A stretch of 64,000 nt of DNA from Vitrella brassicaformis CCMP3155. Its lineage: Eukaryota > Protista > Chromerida. A program made the position numbers and the translations under genes. The notes beneath the pieces were generated by a model that did not search any database, was not told the DNA's origin, and saw nothing but the letters and a program-made list of their open reading frames with translations. Where the stretch lies: assembly GCA_001179505.1 (NCBI GenBank), contig CDMY01000571.1:124001-188000 (forward strand). The letters are read 5' to 3'. Of this stretch, positions 49,398-59,781 are shown one piece after another. How positions within the stretch are numbered: position 1 is the first letter of the stretch; every line of letters starts with the position of its first letter.

Positions 49398-50818
49398 GAT
49401 GACCGGTTGCCTTACGGGCCCGATTGTGTCGTGGCTGATCCACAGAGAGGAGCAAAGACGAGAGGTGGCACCCAAAGTCTTCTATGACTGGTCCAGCGCG
49501 GCCCTCTCTGTGGACGGCCCCCCTGCTGCTGCCTCTGCTGCGTCGGGCAAGTGCCACCCCTCCTTCGGCCGGCCGGTGCACCGTGTGGTGACGGCCATGC
49601 AGCTGACGTCAGCCGCCATGCAGGACGTCATCGAGACCCTCAAACTCACACATGTCCCCAGCGACTTGTAAGCCCACGACTCCCTAGCACAGCTCGCCTG
49701 TGCGCCTCTTTTGTGTGTCGTCGTTCAGCCATGGGTTTCTGTGGAGCCACGCCTTCCTGGTGCAGAGTTTGCGTCAGAAGACAGTGGAGATGCGCAGCCG
49801 ACGACGAGGGCAGGTGGTCGTCCACCTGCCGAGACCCGACGAGACAAGCGCCACGGTGAGGCATTCCTGTGGCGGCTGTGATGGGCAGACACGTGTGTGT
49901 GTTGGCAGGGTTTGCGGCACATGGGGACGAGCGACCTCTCCCACGCATTCGCAAACCAGCGCTCCCTAAGACATGCCGGTCATCCTGCTGCTTGATGCAC
50001 TGATACATATCGTAAACACCGATTCGCCGTGTGCTGTCGTGATGGTGATGGTTTCAGTGTCCAGTCGACTGAAGGACGGCAAGGCGTCTCGTGACGGTAG
50101 TGTTGCTGAGTGGACGGCGGACAGTGACGTACAGCCGACAGACAGGTACAAGGCCGTTGTGGAGCGGCCAATATGACCCTTCGGTGCTCTCTCTCTCTCT
50201 GTCAGTTGTCAGTATTCTGTGGTGTCGCCGGGCATAGCTCTGCATGACCTCCAGGCCAATCTCGCCTATGTGGTGGACGAGCTCGTCACGAGAGAACAGC
50301 TGCACCAGGCGGCACTGCAAAAGGCCGGAGACACTGACCTGGAGAAGGCCGACACTGAGGTGTCGCAGCGGCATCACACTGGCGGCTGGAAGGCCCTCTA
50401 CGAGGCATTCAAGAAGGCCAAACGGACACTCATCAAAGCCGGCAGCCCGCCGGTCAGCGGACGAGAGCAGTCGATGTCCCTCTGTCTGTCGATGAGCATA
50501 AACCCACCTCTGTTGCGTTGAATGCAGGGGGCCATCCCGGAGGTCCTCGCAAGCCTCGTGCCGATGGTAGTAGATACGCCAGCCGCCACAGAGGACGTGC
50601 CGATGAGCGGCATGTCGTCGCCCGCCAGCTCAACCCGGTCGCAGCAGAGCGATTGCCAGGAGGCCCTCACGCCCCTCTCTCAGCTCGTGTGGGTCGATTG
50701 GCATCGGCTCAGCAGCCAAGACAAGGACAGCGCAGCCCTGTCGATGTCAGTGGAGGCCGTCTACGATGCCGTGGCGGCGATGGACGGCACCGCAGCCAAC
50801 GAGGATGACGACAAGTAG
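49398..50818 (+). CDS. Hypothetical multi-exon protein, copy B1; start uncertain
   Basis: Exons MQDVIETLKLTHVPSD, HGFLWSHAFLVQSLRQK, IALHDLQANLAYVVDELVTREQ, GAIPEVLASL...ANEDDDK*. The inverted paralogue shows synonymous differences. Confidence 0.6.
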
Positions 50819-51559
50819 CTCTGTCAAGGCCGCGGCGGCCCATGTGAGGGAATGTCAGCCGAGGCGATGGGACAGGCATACGCAGACTGGACGGGACGAT
50901 CAAATTTATCCTATACATATATATATGCTGTGGATTGAGGGTGTGTGTATGCTTGTTTGTTGCGTTGTGTTTTCTGATGGTTTTCATCGAAACTCAAGAC
51001 GAAACTCAAGACGAATACACGTGTAATCGACACGTGTCTGCAGGTGAGAGAGGCGTGCGTGGGACGAGTGCATGTGGGCACGCACCCTTTTCTGTGGCTC
51101 TGCCCTTACATGGCCGGCTGGGCCATACCGTCGGTGCGGTACGTCTTTTGGTTTTATCTTGGTACTGTTTCGGTGTAAGGCCCATTTTGACAGTGCATGT
51201 GTTCTGCGTGGGTGAGCCATTTTGCTGGTGTGTTTTGTATAGCCATAGGAAGACTTGCATTGAATAAATTTGTACAAGCGATATGATTGGTCTGTTCGCA
51301 TTCATATGGGAAACCCGCGTAGACAATCTCAGACAGCCTCCTCTCATGTGCTGTTCACTTCCCGCCCATCTTTGCTAAATGCATGTGTCCGATGCACACG
51401 CATGCCAGCCGTCACTCAGCCGGCGAAGAGACACTGCCGCACACACGCAGAAGACTCGCTAGGGACTCTATCAGGTAAATCGTGATGCAAAGAGCACCAG
51501 ACCGTTCTGACAAAATGCCTGCGGGGCTTAAACACCCCTGCAGGCACACACACACACAT

Positions 51560-51593
<34 letters not shown>

Positions 51594-51885
51594 GGACAAC
51601 GAAGATGCATTACAAAGACGCACGTGCACAGATTGGTTGGCGAAACCCTTCCTACAGATGAGGGTACTGTTGGTCATGCATTGAGTGGCCAAGACAGAAA
51701 GAATGACAGACAGACAGACAGACATACATGAACCGTAGGTGGACAGGCACAACGCCACGCATGCATGCATATCCCTCCCTGCACGCACTCTTGTCCTGCC
51801 ATCTGGGATCGGCCTTCCCTCCAGGATTTCGGAGGCAATCATGGCATTACAGTAGTCAAGAAGGAAGGAACGACCGGCGATGCCG

Positions 51886-52954
51886 TCACTCATCACCACC
51901 GCCGCCACCTCCGTCACTTCCAGAATCCCCACTGTTCCCACCATCGGAGCCGCTGTCAGTTCCACCGCCACCGACACCACCTGCTCCGTTATCTCTGTCA
52001 TTACCGAGACCACCCCCTCTGTCATTGTTGTCTTCCAAGCCGGTAACACCTCCATTGTTGCCTCTGTCGCCAATACCGTTCACGCCGCCACCACCCCGCC
52101 CGTCATCGCTCCCGTTGTCAGTACCGGGAAAATCGTCGCTGAGACCACAGAAGTCAGATCAACATTCACACGATGCGTGGGTCGTCAGCAGGAGGTGTAT
52201 GCTTACTCATCAGGGCGCAACTCTGGAGCAGGAGGGGCCGCATGTGGAGGTGAGGGATCGGGCCTGATCAAGGGAGGTCAGATCAACATTCTCACTATGG
52301 CTGGGTCATGAGCACGAAGCATCGCTTGCGGATCGGGCTCAGATCGTGGCGCCAAGCTTTCCTCGCCCCCTTGGCCTATCCCTTGCTCGGGTGTCTGCGG
52401 GATGACGCTCTCTCCTGCTGCCGACCCTCCTGTGTTCCCGCCTGTGGTCCCAGGACTGCCGGAACTGCTGCTTGCGCTGCCGGTGGTTCTGCTGCTAGTC
52501 CCTGAAAGAAACACACGATCATTAGACCGCACATGCATGCTATCTTTCTCTTGTCATTTTGCTCACCCGAGTCCCATCGACTGTAACCCAAGCCCGTCGA
52601 GTAGGCTGGAGTCGAGGCTGAGCTTGAACTGTCGGTGCCGTTGAATATGCCGGTCAACCGATCCATTTCCTCATCCGTCAGCACGGACTGCAGCTTTCGC
52701 CGCTGATCCCCGTCTCGTTGATTCACCACGGCACCTCGGCCGCCATCGGTCAATCGCTCCTCCTGCACTGCGCGGAGACGACGGCGCTGAGTGCAGAGAC
52801 AGAACAGAGCAGACGCAGAGGTGCGTGACTGACTGTCTTGGCGCCTGTCTTGAGTGCGACGTACCTGTCCGACGTGGCAGGAGGTGGCGGAGAGCACCGT
52901 GGCTGTTGTGCAGCACGCCGTCAAAAGGACCGCAGCGAGCCGCGCTGATGCCAT
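51886..52954 (-). CDS. Secreted low-complexity acidic (G/D/N/S-rich) protein, paralogue 1
   Basis: MASARLAAVLLTACCTTATVLSA signal | RRRLRAVQEER...QSVLTDEEMDRLTGIFNG | S/G-rich exons | ...GGGGGDE*. GT-AG junctions checked for exons 1-2. Confidence 0.7.
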
Positions 52955-53311
52955 CAGCTTGATTTGGGGCTTGCTCTGCGACACACGCAAAGATCTGGTT
53001 GCGTGCTTTGCGCTTTGTCGTGCCGGGGAGGGGGGAAGACAGGCACACGCCGGCAGACGACCTGCTCTCCTCTCCTCTCTTCTCAAACCGATTGTCCCGT
53101 CTGCGAGCACTTTCACGGAATGTCATGTTTGTACCCTAAAGCCTTGATGGTAGGGTCTTTCCCGAAACCGCTGATGGGAGAGGGGCGCGAGAGAAGAGAG
53201 AGCTTCTCCCGGCCTGTCTCCTCCCCTCCCCCGCTGTGGCAAAGCACAGAGTACACACTGTCAACCAGATCTTTGACTGTGTCCCACACTTGCCGCGTCC
53301 CAAGTCAAGCC

Positions 53312-54022
53312 ATGATGACATCAGCGGTCTTTCTGTGCAGCCTGGCGGCCACGATGCTCTCCGCCACCCCCTGCCAGGGCACCGGAAGTTCTGACGTCGG
53401 CCAGGTCAGTCAACCGTACTCAAGGCAGACAGTCACTCACGCATCGTCTGCGTGATTCTGTGTTCTGTCGGTCTGTATTGCACCAGCTTCGTCGTCTTCG
53501 TGCAGTGCAGGAGGACCGAAATGAGGTGATGGATCAGCGGAGAGAACTGCAGCCGCAGCAGCCGCAGTCCGTGCTGTCGGCGGAGGAAATCGAGGCTCTG
53601 ACGAACATGTTCGGAGGCAACACGGATTCCAACAACGCCGCTTCGGACTCAATCTCACCTCCAGCGCAATCTCAGAGCTACTCCGGGCTCAATAGATGGA
53701 GCTCTCTTGGCAGTGACAGCAGCAGCTCCGGCAGCGGGGCGCTGCGACGACCAGACTCGTAAGCATGCATGCAGGAACTCCTGATTTCGCTGCAATGTGT
53801 GATGCATGCAGGGCCGATAGTTCTCTCAATCCCAACGGACCCGGTCGAGATACTGGGGATTCCTTGGACCCTGACGGACCTCGGGGAGATACTGGGGATG
53901 ATGACAACGACCGGCGCAACGATCGGGACAACGACCGGGACGATCGGCGCGACAACCGGCGCGACGAGGCTGATGACTCCTTCAACAACGACGGACCTGG
54001 GGAAGATACTGGTGATGAATGA
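53312..54022 (+). CDS. Secreted low-complexity acidic (D/R/N-rich) protein, paralogue 2
   Basis: MMTSAVFLCSLAATMLSA signal | LRRLRAVQEDR...QSVLSAEEIEALTNMFGG | ...DRRNDRDNDRDD...DTGDE*. Confidence 0.7.
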
Positions 54023-55293
54023 AGCCCATCGGCGTTCCTCGTGTTGTGCGATGCCACACATGAATGGTTGCCTCCGAAACCCTGGAGGGAAGGCCAATCC
54101 CAGATGGCAGGAGAGAGTGCGCGGGATGTCCACCTACGGCTCAACCTGTCTGTCTGTGTGGGGCTGTCTGTCTGTGTTGGCTGCTCTGTGGACAAATTGC
54201 TTGGTTAGTTAGTTAGTTGGTCAATTAGTTAGTCAGTTAGTACGGTCAATTAGTTAGTCAGTTAGTACGGTCATGTCTGTAGGTACGGATTTGCCAAAGA
54301 GAGTCGCTTGCTGATGCGCGTTTGTTTGTGAAGTGGCTTGGTGTGGTGGGCGAGTAATGCTATGCTGCTGCCAACGCTCTCTCTCTCTCTCTCTCTCGCT
54401 CTCTCTATGTGGTGGGGAGCGGGGGGAGGGACATCGTGTGTGCACGTGGATGCCGGAATGTGGGCCACTTTTACTTCAAAGGATAAAATGCTACTGCTGT
54501 GTGCCCTGCCATTTTATCAGTGTGCACATATCCTTTTCGGCTGCTGCTGCTGCTCTCTGATTGCGATGTGTGTGGTGGCACATGGTACAGCCACAATCAG
54601 GTGGCTTATACATACATGTTGGTTGGCTGCATGTGTGCGGTGCGGTTGTGATTTTTTCCAGCTGCAGCAGAGCGGTGGCATGCGTGTGTATATCTGACGC
54701 ACGGGGTGGGGGTCGGATGTGGCTCATGCGAACATATGGATGGATGTGGCTCGTTTGTTTGACTGAATGTCCTCATTCAGAAGCGTCAGTGATGTGATCC
54801 GTTCACACGTTCACACACTCCCTGAACGAGACTGAGCATGTCAAGCGACTGCGTTCGTTCTGCTGACAGCGGCATAAATTTCCTACATGGAATGGACCCA
54901 TCATGCATGTACACGTAAGATGTGGACCTATGCTCTGTCTGCCACTCGCGCATTATCGATCAAAATGGGCCACAAAAGGACGCTTAGATGAATAAAAACC
55001 ATGATAAAACCACCAACTACCAACGGCCATGTAAAGAGCAGAGCCAAAGAAAGGGTGCGTGCCCACATGCACTCGTCCCACGCACTCCTCTCACCTGCAG
55101 ACACGTGTCGATTACACGTGTACGTCTGAGTTTCGATAAAAACCGTCAGAAAACACAACGCAACACACCATACACACGCGCCCTCAATCCACAGCATAGG
55201 CATAACAATGAATTTGATCGTCCCGTCCCCGTACGCCTGTCCCATCGCCTCGGCTGACATTCCCTCACATGGGCCGCCGCGGCCTTGACAGAG

Positions 55294-56519
55294 CTACTTG
55301 TCGTCATCCTCGTTGGCTGCGGTGCCGTCCATCGCCGCCACGGCATCGTAAACTGCCTCGGCTGACATCGACAGGGCCGCGCTGTCCTTGTGATCGCTGC
55401 TGAGCCGATGCCAATCGACCCACACGAGCTGAGAGGGGGGCGTGAGGGCCTCCTGGTAATCGCTCTGCTGCGACCGGGTTGAGCTGGCGGGGGACGACAT
55501 GCCGCTCATCGGCACGTCCTCTGTGGCGGCTGGCGTATCCATCACCATTGGCACGAGGCTCGCAAGGACCTCCGGGATGGCCCCCTGCATTCAACGCAAC
55601 AGAGGTGGGCACATGATCTGCTCATCGACAGAAAAAAGATGGACATCGGTAGCTCTCGTCCGCTGACCGGCGGGCTGCCCGCTTTGATGAGTGATTGTTT
55701 GGCCTTCTTGAATGCCTCGTAGAGGGCCTTCCAGCCGCCAGCGTGATGCTGCTGCGACACCTCAGTGTCGGCCTTCTCCAGGTCAGTGCCGTCGGCCTTT
55801 TGCAGTGCCGCCTGGTGCAGCTGTTCTCTCGTGACGAGCTCGTCCACCACATAGGCGAGATTGGCCTGGAGGTCATGCAGAGCTATGCCCGGCGACACCA
55901 CTGAATACTGACAACTGACAGAGAACGAACCACAGGAAGAGAGAGAGAGAGAGCACCGAAGGGTCAGATTGGCCGCTCCACACAATGGCCGCCATTTACC
56001 TGTCTGTCGGCTGTACGTCACTGTCCGCCGTCCACTCAGCAACACTACCGTCACGAGACGCCTTGCTGTCCTTCAGCCGACTCGACACTGCAATCATCAC
56101 ACGACAGCACACGGCGAATCGGTGTGGTGTGTAGTCATGTGTCAAGCAGCAAGATGACCGGCATGTCTCAGAGAGCGTTGGTTTGCGAATGCGTGGGAGA
56201 GGTCGCTCGTCCCCATGTGCCGCAAACCCTGCCAACACACACACGTGTCTGCCCATCACAGCCGCCACAGGAGTGCCTCACCGTGGCGCTGGTCTCGTCG
56301 GGTCTCGGCAGGTGGACGACCACCTGCCCTCGTCGTCGGCTGCGCATCTCCACTGTCTTCTGACGCAAACTCTGCACCAGGAAGGCGTGGCTCCACAGAA
56401 ACTCATGGCTGAACGACGACACACAAAAGAGGCGCACAGGCGAGCTGTGCTAGGGAGTCGTGGGCTTACAAGTCGCTGGGCACGTGTGTGAGTTTGAGGG
56501 TCTCGATGACGTCCTGCAT
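55294..56519 (-). CDS. Hypothetical multi-exon protein, inverted copy B2 (5' end in gap)
   Basis: Reverse complement of 49618-50818 with scattered substitutions; the ORFs are nearly identical. Confidence 0.6.
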
Positions 56520-57054: not shown

Positions 57055-57354
57055 CTACGCCCGGTTGTGGTAGGGGTGGTCAGTTTCGAGCTTGGACTTT
57101 TCCTCTCTGGGCGCCATGCCGAGCATTCCGGCGAGGGACTCGAGCACGTCGGTGGACTTGACGATGGCGAGCATCTTACCGCGGTTCTTCTCGAGGATGA
57201 CGCGGTGGGTCTTGGTGGTGACGAAGGCCTCGAGGATGTCGTGGGCGGAGACGGAGGACTGCAGCTTGAGGAAGGGCACGTCGGGCTGAGGGAGGGAGGG
57301 AGGGATGGCACACACGAAGGAGGCACACACACATCAGAGCGCCTGTCACTCTCC

Positions 57355-57389
<35 letters not shown>

Positions 57390-58243
57390 CGTGTGTGTGT
57401 GCCTCACTGACCCTGCAGCCCTTCTCGCGGACGAACTTGACGAAGTCGATGGCCGGCGCGTGGAGAATGTCCTTCTGGGGGAACTGGGCCGCAGCGAGAA
57501 ACAGATACTGAGCAACAGACAATAAACAACATTCAGCAACACATCCATCCATCTATGTGTCTGTGTGTGTGTCTGTGTGACGTAACAAGGCACCTTGATG
57601 TCTCTGGCTGTGATGACCTCCTTCAACTTGGTGGGGTCCATTTCCGACACGATAGGCACGGCGGCGAGGTTGTTGCCCTCCATCACAGCCATGGCCTGCA
57701 CATACACACACACACAGGGCACAGAGGGGCCGTGTGTGTTTCTATGGCTCTTTGTCTTGTCTCTCTGTGCGAGTGGTGTAGGGGTACCTTGAGGAGGCTG
57801 CCCGACTCGAGCATGGTGATGATGGGCTCTTCCAGCGCCTTGCCGAACGACAAATCCTACAGACACACACACACTTGTGTGTTGTGTGTGTGTGGGGGGG
57901 GGGGCGGGAACGTACCCGCCCTATCTCCTTGACGACATTGAACTTTTGCACCAGCGTCAGGATGTCCGAAGGGCTGATCACACGCACAAGACGGTCGCCG
58001 TCGAAAATCGGCCTGATACACACATGGACACACAGATAGACAAACAGACAGACAGACAGACAGACATGGACACACAGCTGTGTGTGTGGGGCCAGCTGTG
58101 GGGTGTTTGGCTTTGGCTGCTTACACTCGTGTGCAGGGTTTGAAGGCGGCGATGATCTGCCCGACGGTGTCTGTGATCTGGTGGCGGATGAAGGGGCTGT
58201 GCTTTGATATGTCTGCAGCGTCCACACACACACACACACACAG

Positions 58244-58280
<37 letters not shown>

Positions 58281-59781
58281 AAGGCAAATACAGAGGCCAC
58301 ATTGCACCGAGTGGAGCTCTCTCTCCCTCTCTCTCTAAGGGCAGGGGTGGTGGGAAACGTACTTGCGACGGCGTCGATTTTGGTTTTGCCGGCCATGGTG
58401 AGGACCTCTCTGAAGTTCTTGTTCTTCCAATCCTTGTTCATCCGCATCAGCAGATAGCTCACGTCCTGCACAAATCATGACACACACACACACACACACA
58501 CGTATCCACCTCCCCCCCCTCTCTCTCTCTCTGTCTCTGTCTCTGTCTGTCTGCGCGCGCGTGTGTGTGGCCGGCCCGTTGATCTGACTTACCGTGACGT
58601 CCATGAAGGAGTATGTGGGCCGGCTCTTCCGCAGACCGCACCACTTGCGCCGGGGATGGTAGACAACCGCTGTGCGCAGCCTGCAAGAAAGAAAGAAAAA
58701 CATCCACGTCCACCAGCCAGCTACACAGACGCTGTGAGTGTGTGTGTGTGAGTCCGTGTGCGGCTGCGTAAGCCACTGACCGTCTGTTGTGCAGCATCTC
58801 GCAGAACTCGAGCACGGTGACGGTGTCGGGCAGTGAGAGCAGCTCCTGCTTACCCAAACATGACAACACCTGCGCCCACCAAAAGAGACACACACACACA
58901 CACACAACACCATGTTGACCGAGCCGCCGCCCCCCTCCCCTCCCTCCCACTCACCTGTCCAATCGGCGTGCCGAGCAGTGTGGTGAGCCTGGCCACGCCC
59001 GACTGGCCGCTCACGTCCCTCTCCACCCCCTCTCCCTCCCCCACACCGTCTGTGCGAACCGCAAACCCACTGGTGGCTGCGCCATTGTCGGCGTCACCAC
59101 CAGCGGCGGCATCCGCGGCACACGCCTCGAGGGCGTCGTCGATATCCATGCCCATGCCCTCCTGCTGCTGCTGCTGCGGGGGGTGGTCGCTGTTGTTGAC
59201 AGGCGAGCCGTCCTGGCTGCTGCCGAGTCCTGCGGGGGCGAACTCCACAACTTTGAGGTCGTCCGACGACCATAGACCGCTCTGTGTGCCGATGCCTGTC
59301 ATGGTGGACTGAGTGAATCCTGCAGTCCAGATGGCGGCCTTGTGCTGCTGGTGGTGGTGTTTGCCGGCGTCGTGGCCGCCGCCCTTGAGGTGTGTGAGTG
59401 AGGTGGACGAGGTGGGCGAGCTGCTGGCTGGAGAGGGGGGGAGGTCGGGAGAGGCGCTCATCCAGCCCTCATGGTCCTCATGCACCTGACACAGCACACA
59501 GAAAGACAGACACAGACACACTCAGCAGCAAGCCACAGAGAAGACACACACAGAATTTGTCTACTCACCTGTGGCAGCCTCTGTGTCTTCCCCTCTCCTC
59601 CTCCCTGTTGACCATCATGATGTGGGTATTCCTTCGAGTCGCTTCTCAGCGCGTGAAAGGCCTCAGCGAGCGTCGCGGGACAGACGCGGCCTCTCTCCCT
59701 CTCACCGGTGCTGCTCTCCTTGCCGGCCTTGCTCAAGTTGCCAGTGACATTCCGCCCCTGGTGCACCACGGCGGCGCTCAT
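57055..59781 (-). CDS. CBS-domain protein (AMPK-gamma/SDS23-like), multi-exon; start uncertain
   Basis: CBS-like exons LSLPDTVTVLEFCEML...SFMDVT, RPIFDGDRLVRVISPSDIL, MEGNNLAAVPIVSE...VITARDIK, THRVILEKNRGKMLAIVKSTDVL. Confidence 0.75.

Follow-up and report, generated by a model that had tools for sequence, protein, structure and literature searches.

Two small head-to-head genes of the alga Vitrella brassicaformis CCMP3155, here called A (minus strand) and B (plus strand), belong to a family of disordered proteins with signal-like N-termini that was found only in Vitrella. They lie at 52.0-54.0 kb of the window, the whole stretch of 64,000 nucleotides that was analyzed (scaffold C571:124001-188000; 59% G+C; four 300-N scaffold gaps), to which positions refer unless a scaffold is named. 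Both proteins carry an RxLR-EER-like motif directly after the signal region (motif 1) and a second R-x-L-Q motif further on (motif 2). Judged from the aligned sequences, the conserved site of the family is this second motif, RR[K/E]L-Q, and the RxLR-EER likeness is neither conserved nor statistically unusual, being no better than chance. It is proposed, with a confidence slightly short of even, that A and B are secreted and that a pro-region would be removed from them by cleavage at R-x-L, chiefly at motif 2, by a protease of the plasmepsin V (PMV)/ASP5 type encoded in the same genome. The locus is a candidate for a secreted protein with an R-x-L pro-region.

Gene Models and Splicing

Both motifs were first pointed out in a preliminary description of the window made from its letters. 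Its coordinates and motif sequences, those of the second R-x-L-Q motifs included, were all correct when the sequence was read again (Table 1); the original observation was confirmed and the interpretation given to it was partly supported. The spliced proteins compared here are database records (P0001-P0004 and P0009-P0011), none of them joined by hand except for three N-terminal strings of fewer than 50 residues used for the hydrophobicity sum.

The junctions that place motif 1 behind the signal region, GQ/RRRL in gene A and GQ/LRRL in gene B, are used exactly in the deposited models CEM23780.1 and CEM23782.1. The splice pattern of type B is also carried by three MMETSP transcripts (P0004, P0010 and P0011), which indicates that B-type genes are expressed and spliced as read. 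Splicing that removes or reframes the motif, which the preliminary description named as a way in which its reading could fail, did not appear, since the deposited models and the type B transcripts keep the motif in frame. Intron 1 of gene A is itself in frame and free of stops, and motif 1 would therefore be in frame even with the intron retained.

The deposited model of gene A (P0001) has 177 residues, ends with ...QAMLRAHDPAIVRMLI (window 52278-52330) and leaves out the conserved last exon; it looks like a model that stops inside a retained intron. The paralogue P0002 (CEL99918.1, 257 aa), which is full-length, ends in a sequence 93% identical to this last exon, and the true gene A protein probably has about 250 residues, as CEL99918.1 does. 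The coordinates given for gene A cover exons 1-3 and the last exon, which a further small exon separates from exon 3. Both genes were already annotated, and UniRef calls each of them "RxLR effector protein"; because no family model matches, this is automatic naming, and the label should not count as evidence for an effector.

A Vitrella-Only Family of Three Types

Six-frame searches of the genome with exon 2 of gene B and with an exon-2 profile found about eight loci of three types, A, B and C (Table 1). All types are built alike: the first exon is signal-like, ends in Q and is followed by a phase-0 intron, after which the protein runs through a charged N-terminal stretch and a Ser-rich middle with RW[D/S]S to an acidic tail, rich in Gly, Asp and Asn, that finishes in DE or GE. 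As a whole the proteins are acidic, with much Gly, Ser, Asp and Asn. Scans of the exon translations and of five spliced proteins against Pfam and NCBIfam gave no match, and for the same five proteins Pfam returned no family at E up to 10, RXLR (PF16810) included. No true relative outside Vitrella was found by a profile search of 1.84 billion representative proteins. A literature search found no paper that ties Vitrella or Chromera to RxLR, or to PEXEL-type processing of their own proteins (PEXEL, Plasmodium export element).

Three apparent relatives were rejected. The Phytophthora infestans match P0005 (5143 aa) is a repeat artefact without any RxL, and a Symbiodinium natans repeat protein (P0007/P0012) and a bacterial repeat protein (P0008) are alike only in the amphipathic segment that follows motif 2 (pairwise E 0.3-0.5, hhalign probability 1%). 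The S. natans protein CAE7517314.1 is made of at least 12 tandem 58-aa repeats, each with DGDADSRHRALLQALGEEEVDEGDL; their order of acidic stretch, R-x-L, Q and EE helix is superficially like the motif-2 block, with no significant homology (E 0.3-0.5).

The second copy of type B (C291:122539-122792) is frameshifted after ...LTNMF. The same frameshift is read in the MMETSP transcript P0011 (199 aa), so this broken copy is real and transcribed and is no assembly error.

Signal Region and Disorder

The N-termini of types A, B and C are signal-like, with a best 12-residue Kyte-Doolittle mean of 2.0-2.6, and sites following the (-3,-1) rule occur at residues 22-27 in types A and B and nowhere in type C. 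Motif 1 starts at residue 31 in A and 32 in B, its RxLR occupying residues 32-35 and 33-36, only 5-10 residues past the likely signal cut. The Leu of motif 2 stands at position 62 of A and 52 of B, about 25-37 residues past the same cut. Across the family types motif 2 reads RKLQS, RELQP or RELQG. The ESM Atlas model is disordered, with a predicted local distance difference test score (pLDDT) of 0.42, and ESM Atlas offered no usable look-alike. The predicted disorder fits cleavage sites, which need to be in disordered regions behind the signal peptide (PMC11754927).

Conservation Centers on the Second Motif

Conservation was measured by segment on the A/B/C alignment with Nei-Gojobori counts of nonsynonymous (pN) and synonymous (pS) differences. 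The columns without variation are concentrated in DQRR-x-LQ and at L36, E39, E40, L44 and F48. The most constrained segment is the motif-2 core DQRRxLQ, with pN of 0-0.06 in all three pairs and pS of up to 0.4. Motif 1 is constrained between A and B (pN 0.09, pS 0.38) and has pN 0.61 and pS 0.67-0.82 when either is compared with C; both values are about 0.3 in the helix block after motif 2, and pN is 0.2-0.6 in the remainder of exon 2.

Motif 1 had been described as one of the few blocks conserved between the paralogues; its identity between A and B (8/10) is not significantly above the 59% found over aligned exon 2 (binomial P about 0.15), and it is motif 2 that is invariant instead. The RxLR-EER-like motif is indeed present in both A and B, but exon 2 of type C opens with RCHLRRANR, with no RxL, RxLR or EER at motif 1, and the RxLR-EER look is thus restricted to two of the three lineages. 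Even there the EER position varies: three copies of type A have EER, the one on scaffold C220 has KER and type B has EDR, with no counterpart in type C.

In sequences of family-like composition, RxLR is expected by chance within the 40 residues after the signal peptide in 2-3% of cases, and RxLR followed by [ED][ED][RK] within 20 residues in 0.05-0.1% of secreted proteins (1 per 1,000-2,000), so that about one RxLR-EER-like match per proteome is expected. The pattern DQ[R/S][R/S]xLQ marks no wider class of proteins, since 7 of its 22 matches in the genome are the family itself and the remaining 15 sit at the control level of 5-16.

A Plasmepsin V/ASP5-Type Protease in the Same Genome

At least a dozen pepsin-family loci were found in the V. 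brassicaformis genome. The preliminary description had suggested a search for an ASP5 or plasmepsin V orthologue, and a gene of this type was found on scaffold C688: its best match among solved structures is P. vivax plasmepsin V (PvPMV; 138 bits, E 4e-39), the next family reaching 33 bits. The encoded protease has the catalytic motifs DTGS and DSG and a Cys-rich Nep1-like insert, and a membrane helix lies at its C-terminus. Its flap YTEGSQ aligns with YCEGSQ of PvPMV, with a Gln 42 residues onward in both. According to a modelling preprint, a Glu and a Gln of ASP5 and PMV hold the Arg at P3 (bioRxiv 10.1101/2023.02.16.528815), and the flap Glu and the Gln of the Vitrella protease would correspond to this pair by alignment. 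A second pepsin-family locus that was checked groups with the cathepsin D and plasmepsin X types.

Proposed Maturation and Alternative Explanations

In the maturation proposed here, exon 1 would encode a signal peptide and the beginning of exon 2 a short charged pro-region; a short amphipathic segment and a low-complexity acidic tail with a DE or GE end would follow. The pro-region would hold up to two Arg-x-Leu sites, motif 1 (RRL/R, in A and B only) and motif 2 (RR[K/E]L/Q, in all types). Signal peptidase would cut the signal peptide, and a cut behind the Leu of R-x-L, made in the endoplasmic reticulum (ER) or Golgi, would then remove the pro-region. Motif 2 would be the main site and motif 1 an extra, dispensable RRL site. 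The cutting enzyme would be the membrane-anchored plasmepsin V/ASP5-type aspartyl protease described above, and the mature protein would start with Gln. Such a step would belong to the maturation of an algal extracellular or wall protein, with no signal for host translocation.

Several observations weigh against this proposal. Motif 2 is R-[K/E]-L rather than RRL, and Toxoplasma ASP5 left an REL site uncut in vitro (PMC4764566). The fifth PEXEL position (P2') is A, S, P or G in the two motifs and never E, Q or D; both invariant Args of motif 2 fit a dibasic site equally well, and type C has no R-x-L at motif 1. The invariance is statistically weak, with only three divergent lineages, and about 25% of stretches of 40 residues with such a composition would contain any single R-x-L by chance. 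Signal peptides were judged by simple rules, without a trained predictor, and MMETSP transcripts turned up for type B only, none for type A.

The invariant block could also act with no RxL cleavage at all, the DQRRxLQ core and the amphipathic segment forming a short linear motif for binding or sorting (to dock with a partner in the wall, for instance, or to send the protein to a secretory compartment) and motif 1 reflecting the shared ancestry of A and B, an explanation we consider possible but doubtful. It would suit an invariance that runs past RxL with the helical spacing of L36, E39, E40, L44 and F48, as well as the loss of motif 1 in type C and an A/B identity there that does not exceed the background. 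The segment moreover resembles common amphipathic interaction helices, because the profile drew unrelated proteins with repeated 'LTQEEIDRL' or 'RALLQALGEEE' helices. Against this, pN about equals pS (~0.3) in the helix block overall and the constraint is concentrated in the seven-residue RxL core, and the position after the signal, the disordered protein and the presence of a PMV-type protease in the genome fit a processing site. If the site is indeed one of cleavage, the enzyme could be a subtilisin-type convertase acting after Arg-Arg, at RR/[K/E]LQ in motif 2 and, in motif 1, at RRR or LRR/. Neither R29 nor R30 varies, and motif 1 of type C keeps RR (RCHLRRA) though it has no RxL. RRLR also matches the minimal R-x-x-R site. 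We nevertheless regard a dibasic site as improbable, since L32 and Q33, which it does not need, are as invariant as both Args; a six-frame genome search, in which generic subtilases were not looked for, found no kexin/furin P-domain, which is weak evidence because exons fragment domains.

Delivery of the proteins into the cells of a host, coral or another partner, as effectors of the oomycete RxLR-dEER kind is what the name in UniRef would imply for both genes, and a regular expression of signal, RxLR and EER does match type A. Vitrella was isolated from coral. This explanation is nonetheless very improbable: there is no match to Pfam RXLR (PF16810) and no folded effector domain, the whole protein being predicted to be disordered; EER gives way to EDR in type B and to KER in one A copy and is absent, together with RxLR, from type C; chance alone would give the pattern about once in a proteome; and there is no real oomycete homologue, the sole P. 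infestans match being the repeat artefact without RxL. R-x-L removal of a pro-region by the PMV/ASP5-type protease is the preferred, if tentative, explanation.

Surroundings of the Gene Pair

The pair lies in the inner part of an inverted duplication centered at about 53130, and this part is only 50-60% identical. Between the outer arms (about 49600-51100 and 55000-56519) identity is 90-100%. Sequences of the arm family are dispersed over at least 25 places in the genome, with about 70% identity, and no Pfam domain was found in the open reading frames (ORFs) of the arms. The arms are probably a flanking repeat and no evidence on the age of the pair; a transposable element and a multigene family are both conceivable. 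The unit of arm, gene, gene and arm is repeated as a whole on scaffold C291 at 92-96% identity, with the same head-to-head A/B pair. The region between the two start codons is presumed to be a two-way promoter.

An element of 58 nt in the 3' untranslated region (3'UTR) is 92-94% identical between A and B; aligned exon-2 coding DNA of the two is mostly 50-70% identical and reaches 83-86% only at the two short motifs. It occurs at only five places in the genome, all of them in 3'UTRs of the A/B/C family, and RNA folding gave no significant fold (z = 0.08). Its function may be regulatory, or it may mark a patch where gene conversion took place.

The acidic tail in exon 3 of gene B (53830-54019) contains three [N/D]P[N/D]GP(G)[R/E](G)DTGD units, one with RGD, and a run of DR/NR dipeptides. 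The acidic tails of all three types have DE or GE ends; a role in calcium binding or as a C-terminal signal is conceivable. Compound (CA)n/(GA)n microsatellites recur in intergenic DNA around the pair (51540-51598, 54380-54400, 57341-57404 and 58223-58285) and account for many of the short inverted repeats that were listed.

Table 1. Genes, motifs and related loci; positions are those of the window unless a scaffold is given.
Feature	Location	Strand	Description
Gene A	51886..52954	-	CEM23780.1 / UniProt A0A0G4G5F5; P0001 matches exons 1-3 exactly
Gene A exon 1	52865-52954	-	Met 52954; 30 codons, MASARLAAVLLTACCTTATVLSATSCHVGQ, signal-like, ending ...SCHVGQ at 52865
Gene A intron 1	52787-52864	-	78 nt, GT..AG
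Gene A exon 2	about 52566-52786	-	opens at 52786 with RRRLRAVQEER
Gene A exon 3	about 52326-52505	-	
Gene A last exon	51889-52137	-	ends ...GGGGGGDE; stop 51886-51888
Gene B	53312..54022	+	CEM23782.1 / UniProt A0A0G4G5W1, 191 aa; model identical to P0009
Gene B exons	53312-53404, 53487-53758, 53812-54022	+	Met 53312; exon 1 of 31 codons, ...SSDVGQ; C-terminus ...EDTGDE, then stop
Gene B intron 1	53405-53486	+	82 nt
Region between start codons	52955..53311		357 bp, shared; center of the inverted duplication
Motif 1, gene A	52754..52786	-	RRRLRAVQEER, exon 2 codons 1-11; holds RRL (TEXEL-like, that is, like the Toxoplasma export element) and RxLR...EER
Motif 1, gene B	53487..53519	+	LRRLRAVQEDR, exon 2 codons 1-11; RRRLRAVQEDR in other B copies
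Motif 2 core, gene A	52688..52708	-	DQRRKLQ, with R-K-L-Q (RKLQS)
Motif 2 core, gene B	53532..53552	+	DQRRELQ, with R-E-L-Q (RELQP)
Amphipathic segment, gene A	52637..52687	-	SVLTDEEMDRLTGIFNG; after motif 2; L36, E39, E40, L44, F48 invariant
Amphipathic segment, gene B	53568..53618	+	SVLSAEEIEALTNMFGG; preceded by PQQPQ insertion
3'UTR element, gene A	51784..51842	-	about 44 nt past the stop
3'UTR element, gene B	54064..54121	+	42 nt past the stop
Type A	C571, C291, C1020		exon 2 starts RRRLRAVQEER
Type A	C220		exon 2 starts RRRLRAVQKER
Type B	C571		exon 2 starts LRRLRAVQEDR
Type B	C291		exon 2 starts RRRLRAVQEDR; frameshift, also in transcript P0011
Type B	C1019		truncated fragment
Type C	C221		CEL94542.1, P0003; exon 2 starts RCHLRRANRLSDDG
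PMV/ASP5-type protease gene	G000:C688:131100-134591; ORF L028:1468-2631	-	

Significance

A broader idea, which we put forward as speculative and on balance doubtful, is that R-x-L cleavage by a PMV/ASP5-type protease is ordinary pro-protein maturation in free-living photosynthetic relatives of Apicomplexa, that the present family is a genuine substrate, cut at RRL/R and RR[K/E]L/Q to leave an N-terminal Gln, and that PEXEL/TEXEL export in the parasites derives from this pre-parasitic housekeeping pathway. If true, the pathway would be shared in principle with the processing of diatom RXL and oomycete RXLR proteins. If the R-x-L sites are cut, the family would offer an orphan substrate, simple and expressed, for asking whether the plasmepsin V/ASP5 pathway is older than parasitism. 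This question has become approachable, since Vitrella has the enzyme and transfection is possible in the sister alga Chromera (PMC12407925). The locus alone adds one modest candidate only.

Comparison With Known R-x-L Systems

Plasmepsin V cuts the PEXEL, RxLxE/Q/D, after the Leu. The Vitrella proteins resemble its substrates in having Arg at P3 and Leu at P1 soon after an ER-entry signal, and the closest relative of the Vitrella enzyme among solved structures is P. vivax PMV. Neither motif is a PEXEL, however, motif 1 being RRLRA and motif 2 RKLQS, RELQP or RELQG: the P2' residue is A in the former and S, P or G in the latter, and motif 1 follows the signal cut by 5-10 residues. No export machinery is implied for Vitrella. 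In Toxoplasma, the Golgi aspartyl protease ASP5 performs an R-x-L cleavage at RRL before secretion and needs Arg at P3, Arg at P2 and Leu at P1 (PMC4764566). Motif 1 of A and B has this strict RRL, and the genome encodes a membrane-anchored protease of the PMV/ASP5 type, whereas the invariant motif 2 is R-[K/E]-L, type C is without RRL, and there is no host cell and no known dense-granule context.

Oomycete RXLR is cut between L and R and EER after R, before secretion and in disordered regions near the signal peptide (PMC11754927). Type A has the literal order of signal, RxLR and EER within 10 residues, and the step proposed for Vitrella would be mechanistically of the same kind; the Vitrella proteins have neither homology to those of oomycetes nor a WY or other effector domain and do not match Pfam RXLR, EER and even RxLR vary within the family, and the organism is an alga without known host delivery.

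In diatoms, the RXL domain of biosilica-associated proteins (silaffins, cingulins and silicanin-1) consists of a signal peptide and about 30 residues ending in R-x-L, often RRL (PMC5525289). This stretch is removed proteolytically before the mature protein, which is disordered, of low complexity and in many cases acidic or Ser-rich, arrives at the wall (PMC5525289). The Vitrella family has no sequence homology to these proteins, Vitrella makes no silica, and removal of its pro-region is a prediction. The distance of the motif-2 Leu from the likely signal cut (~25-37 residues) and the Ser/Gly/Asp-rich, disordered remainder are nonetheless alike, and it is because the Vitrella proteins fit the diatom RXL layout best that R-x-L removal of a pro-region is proposed for them.

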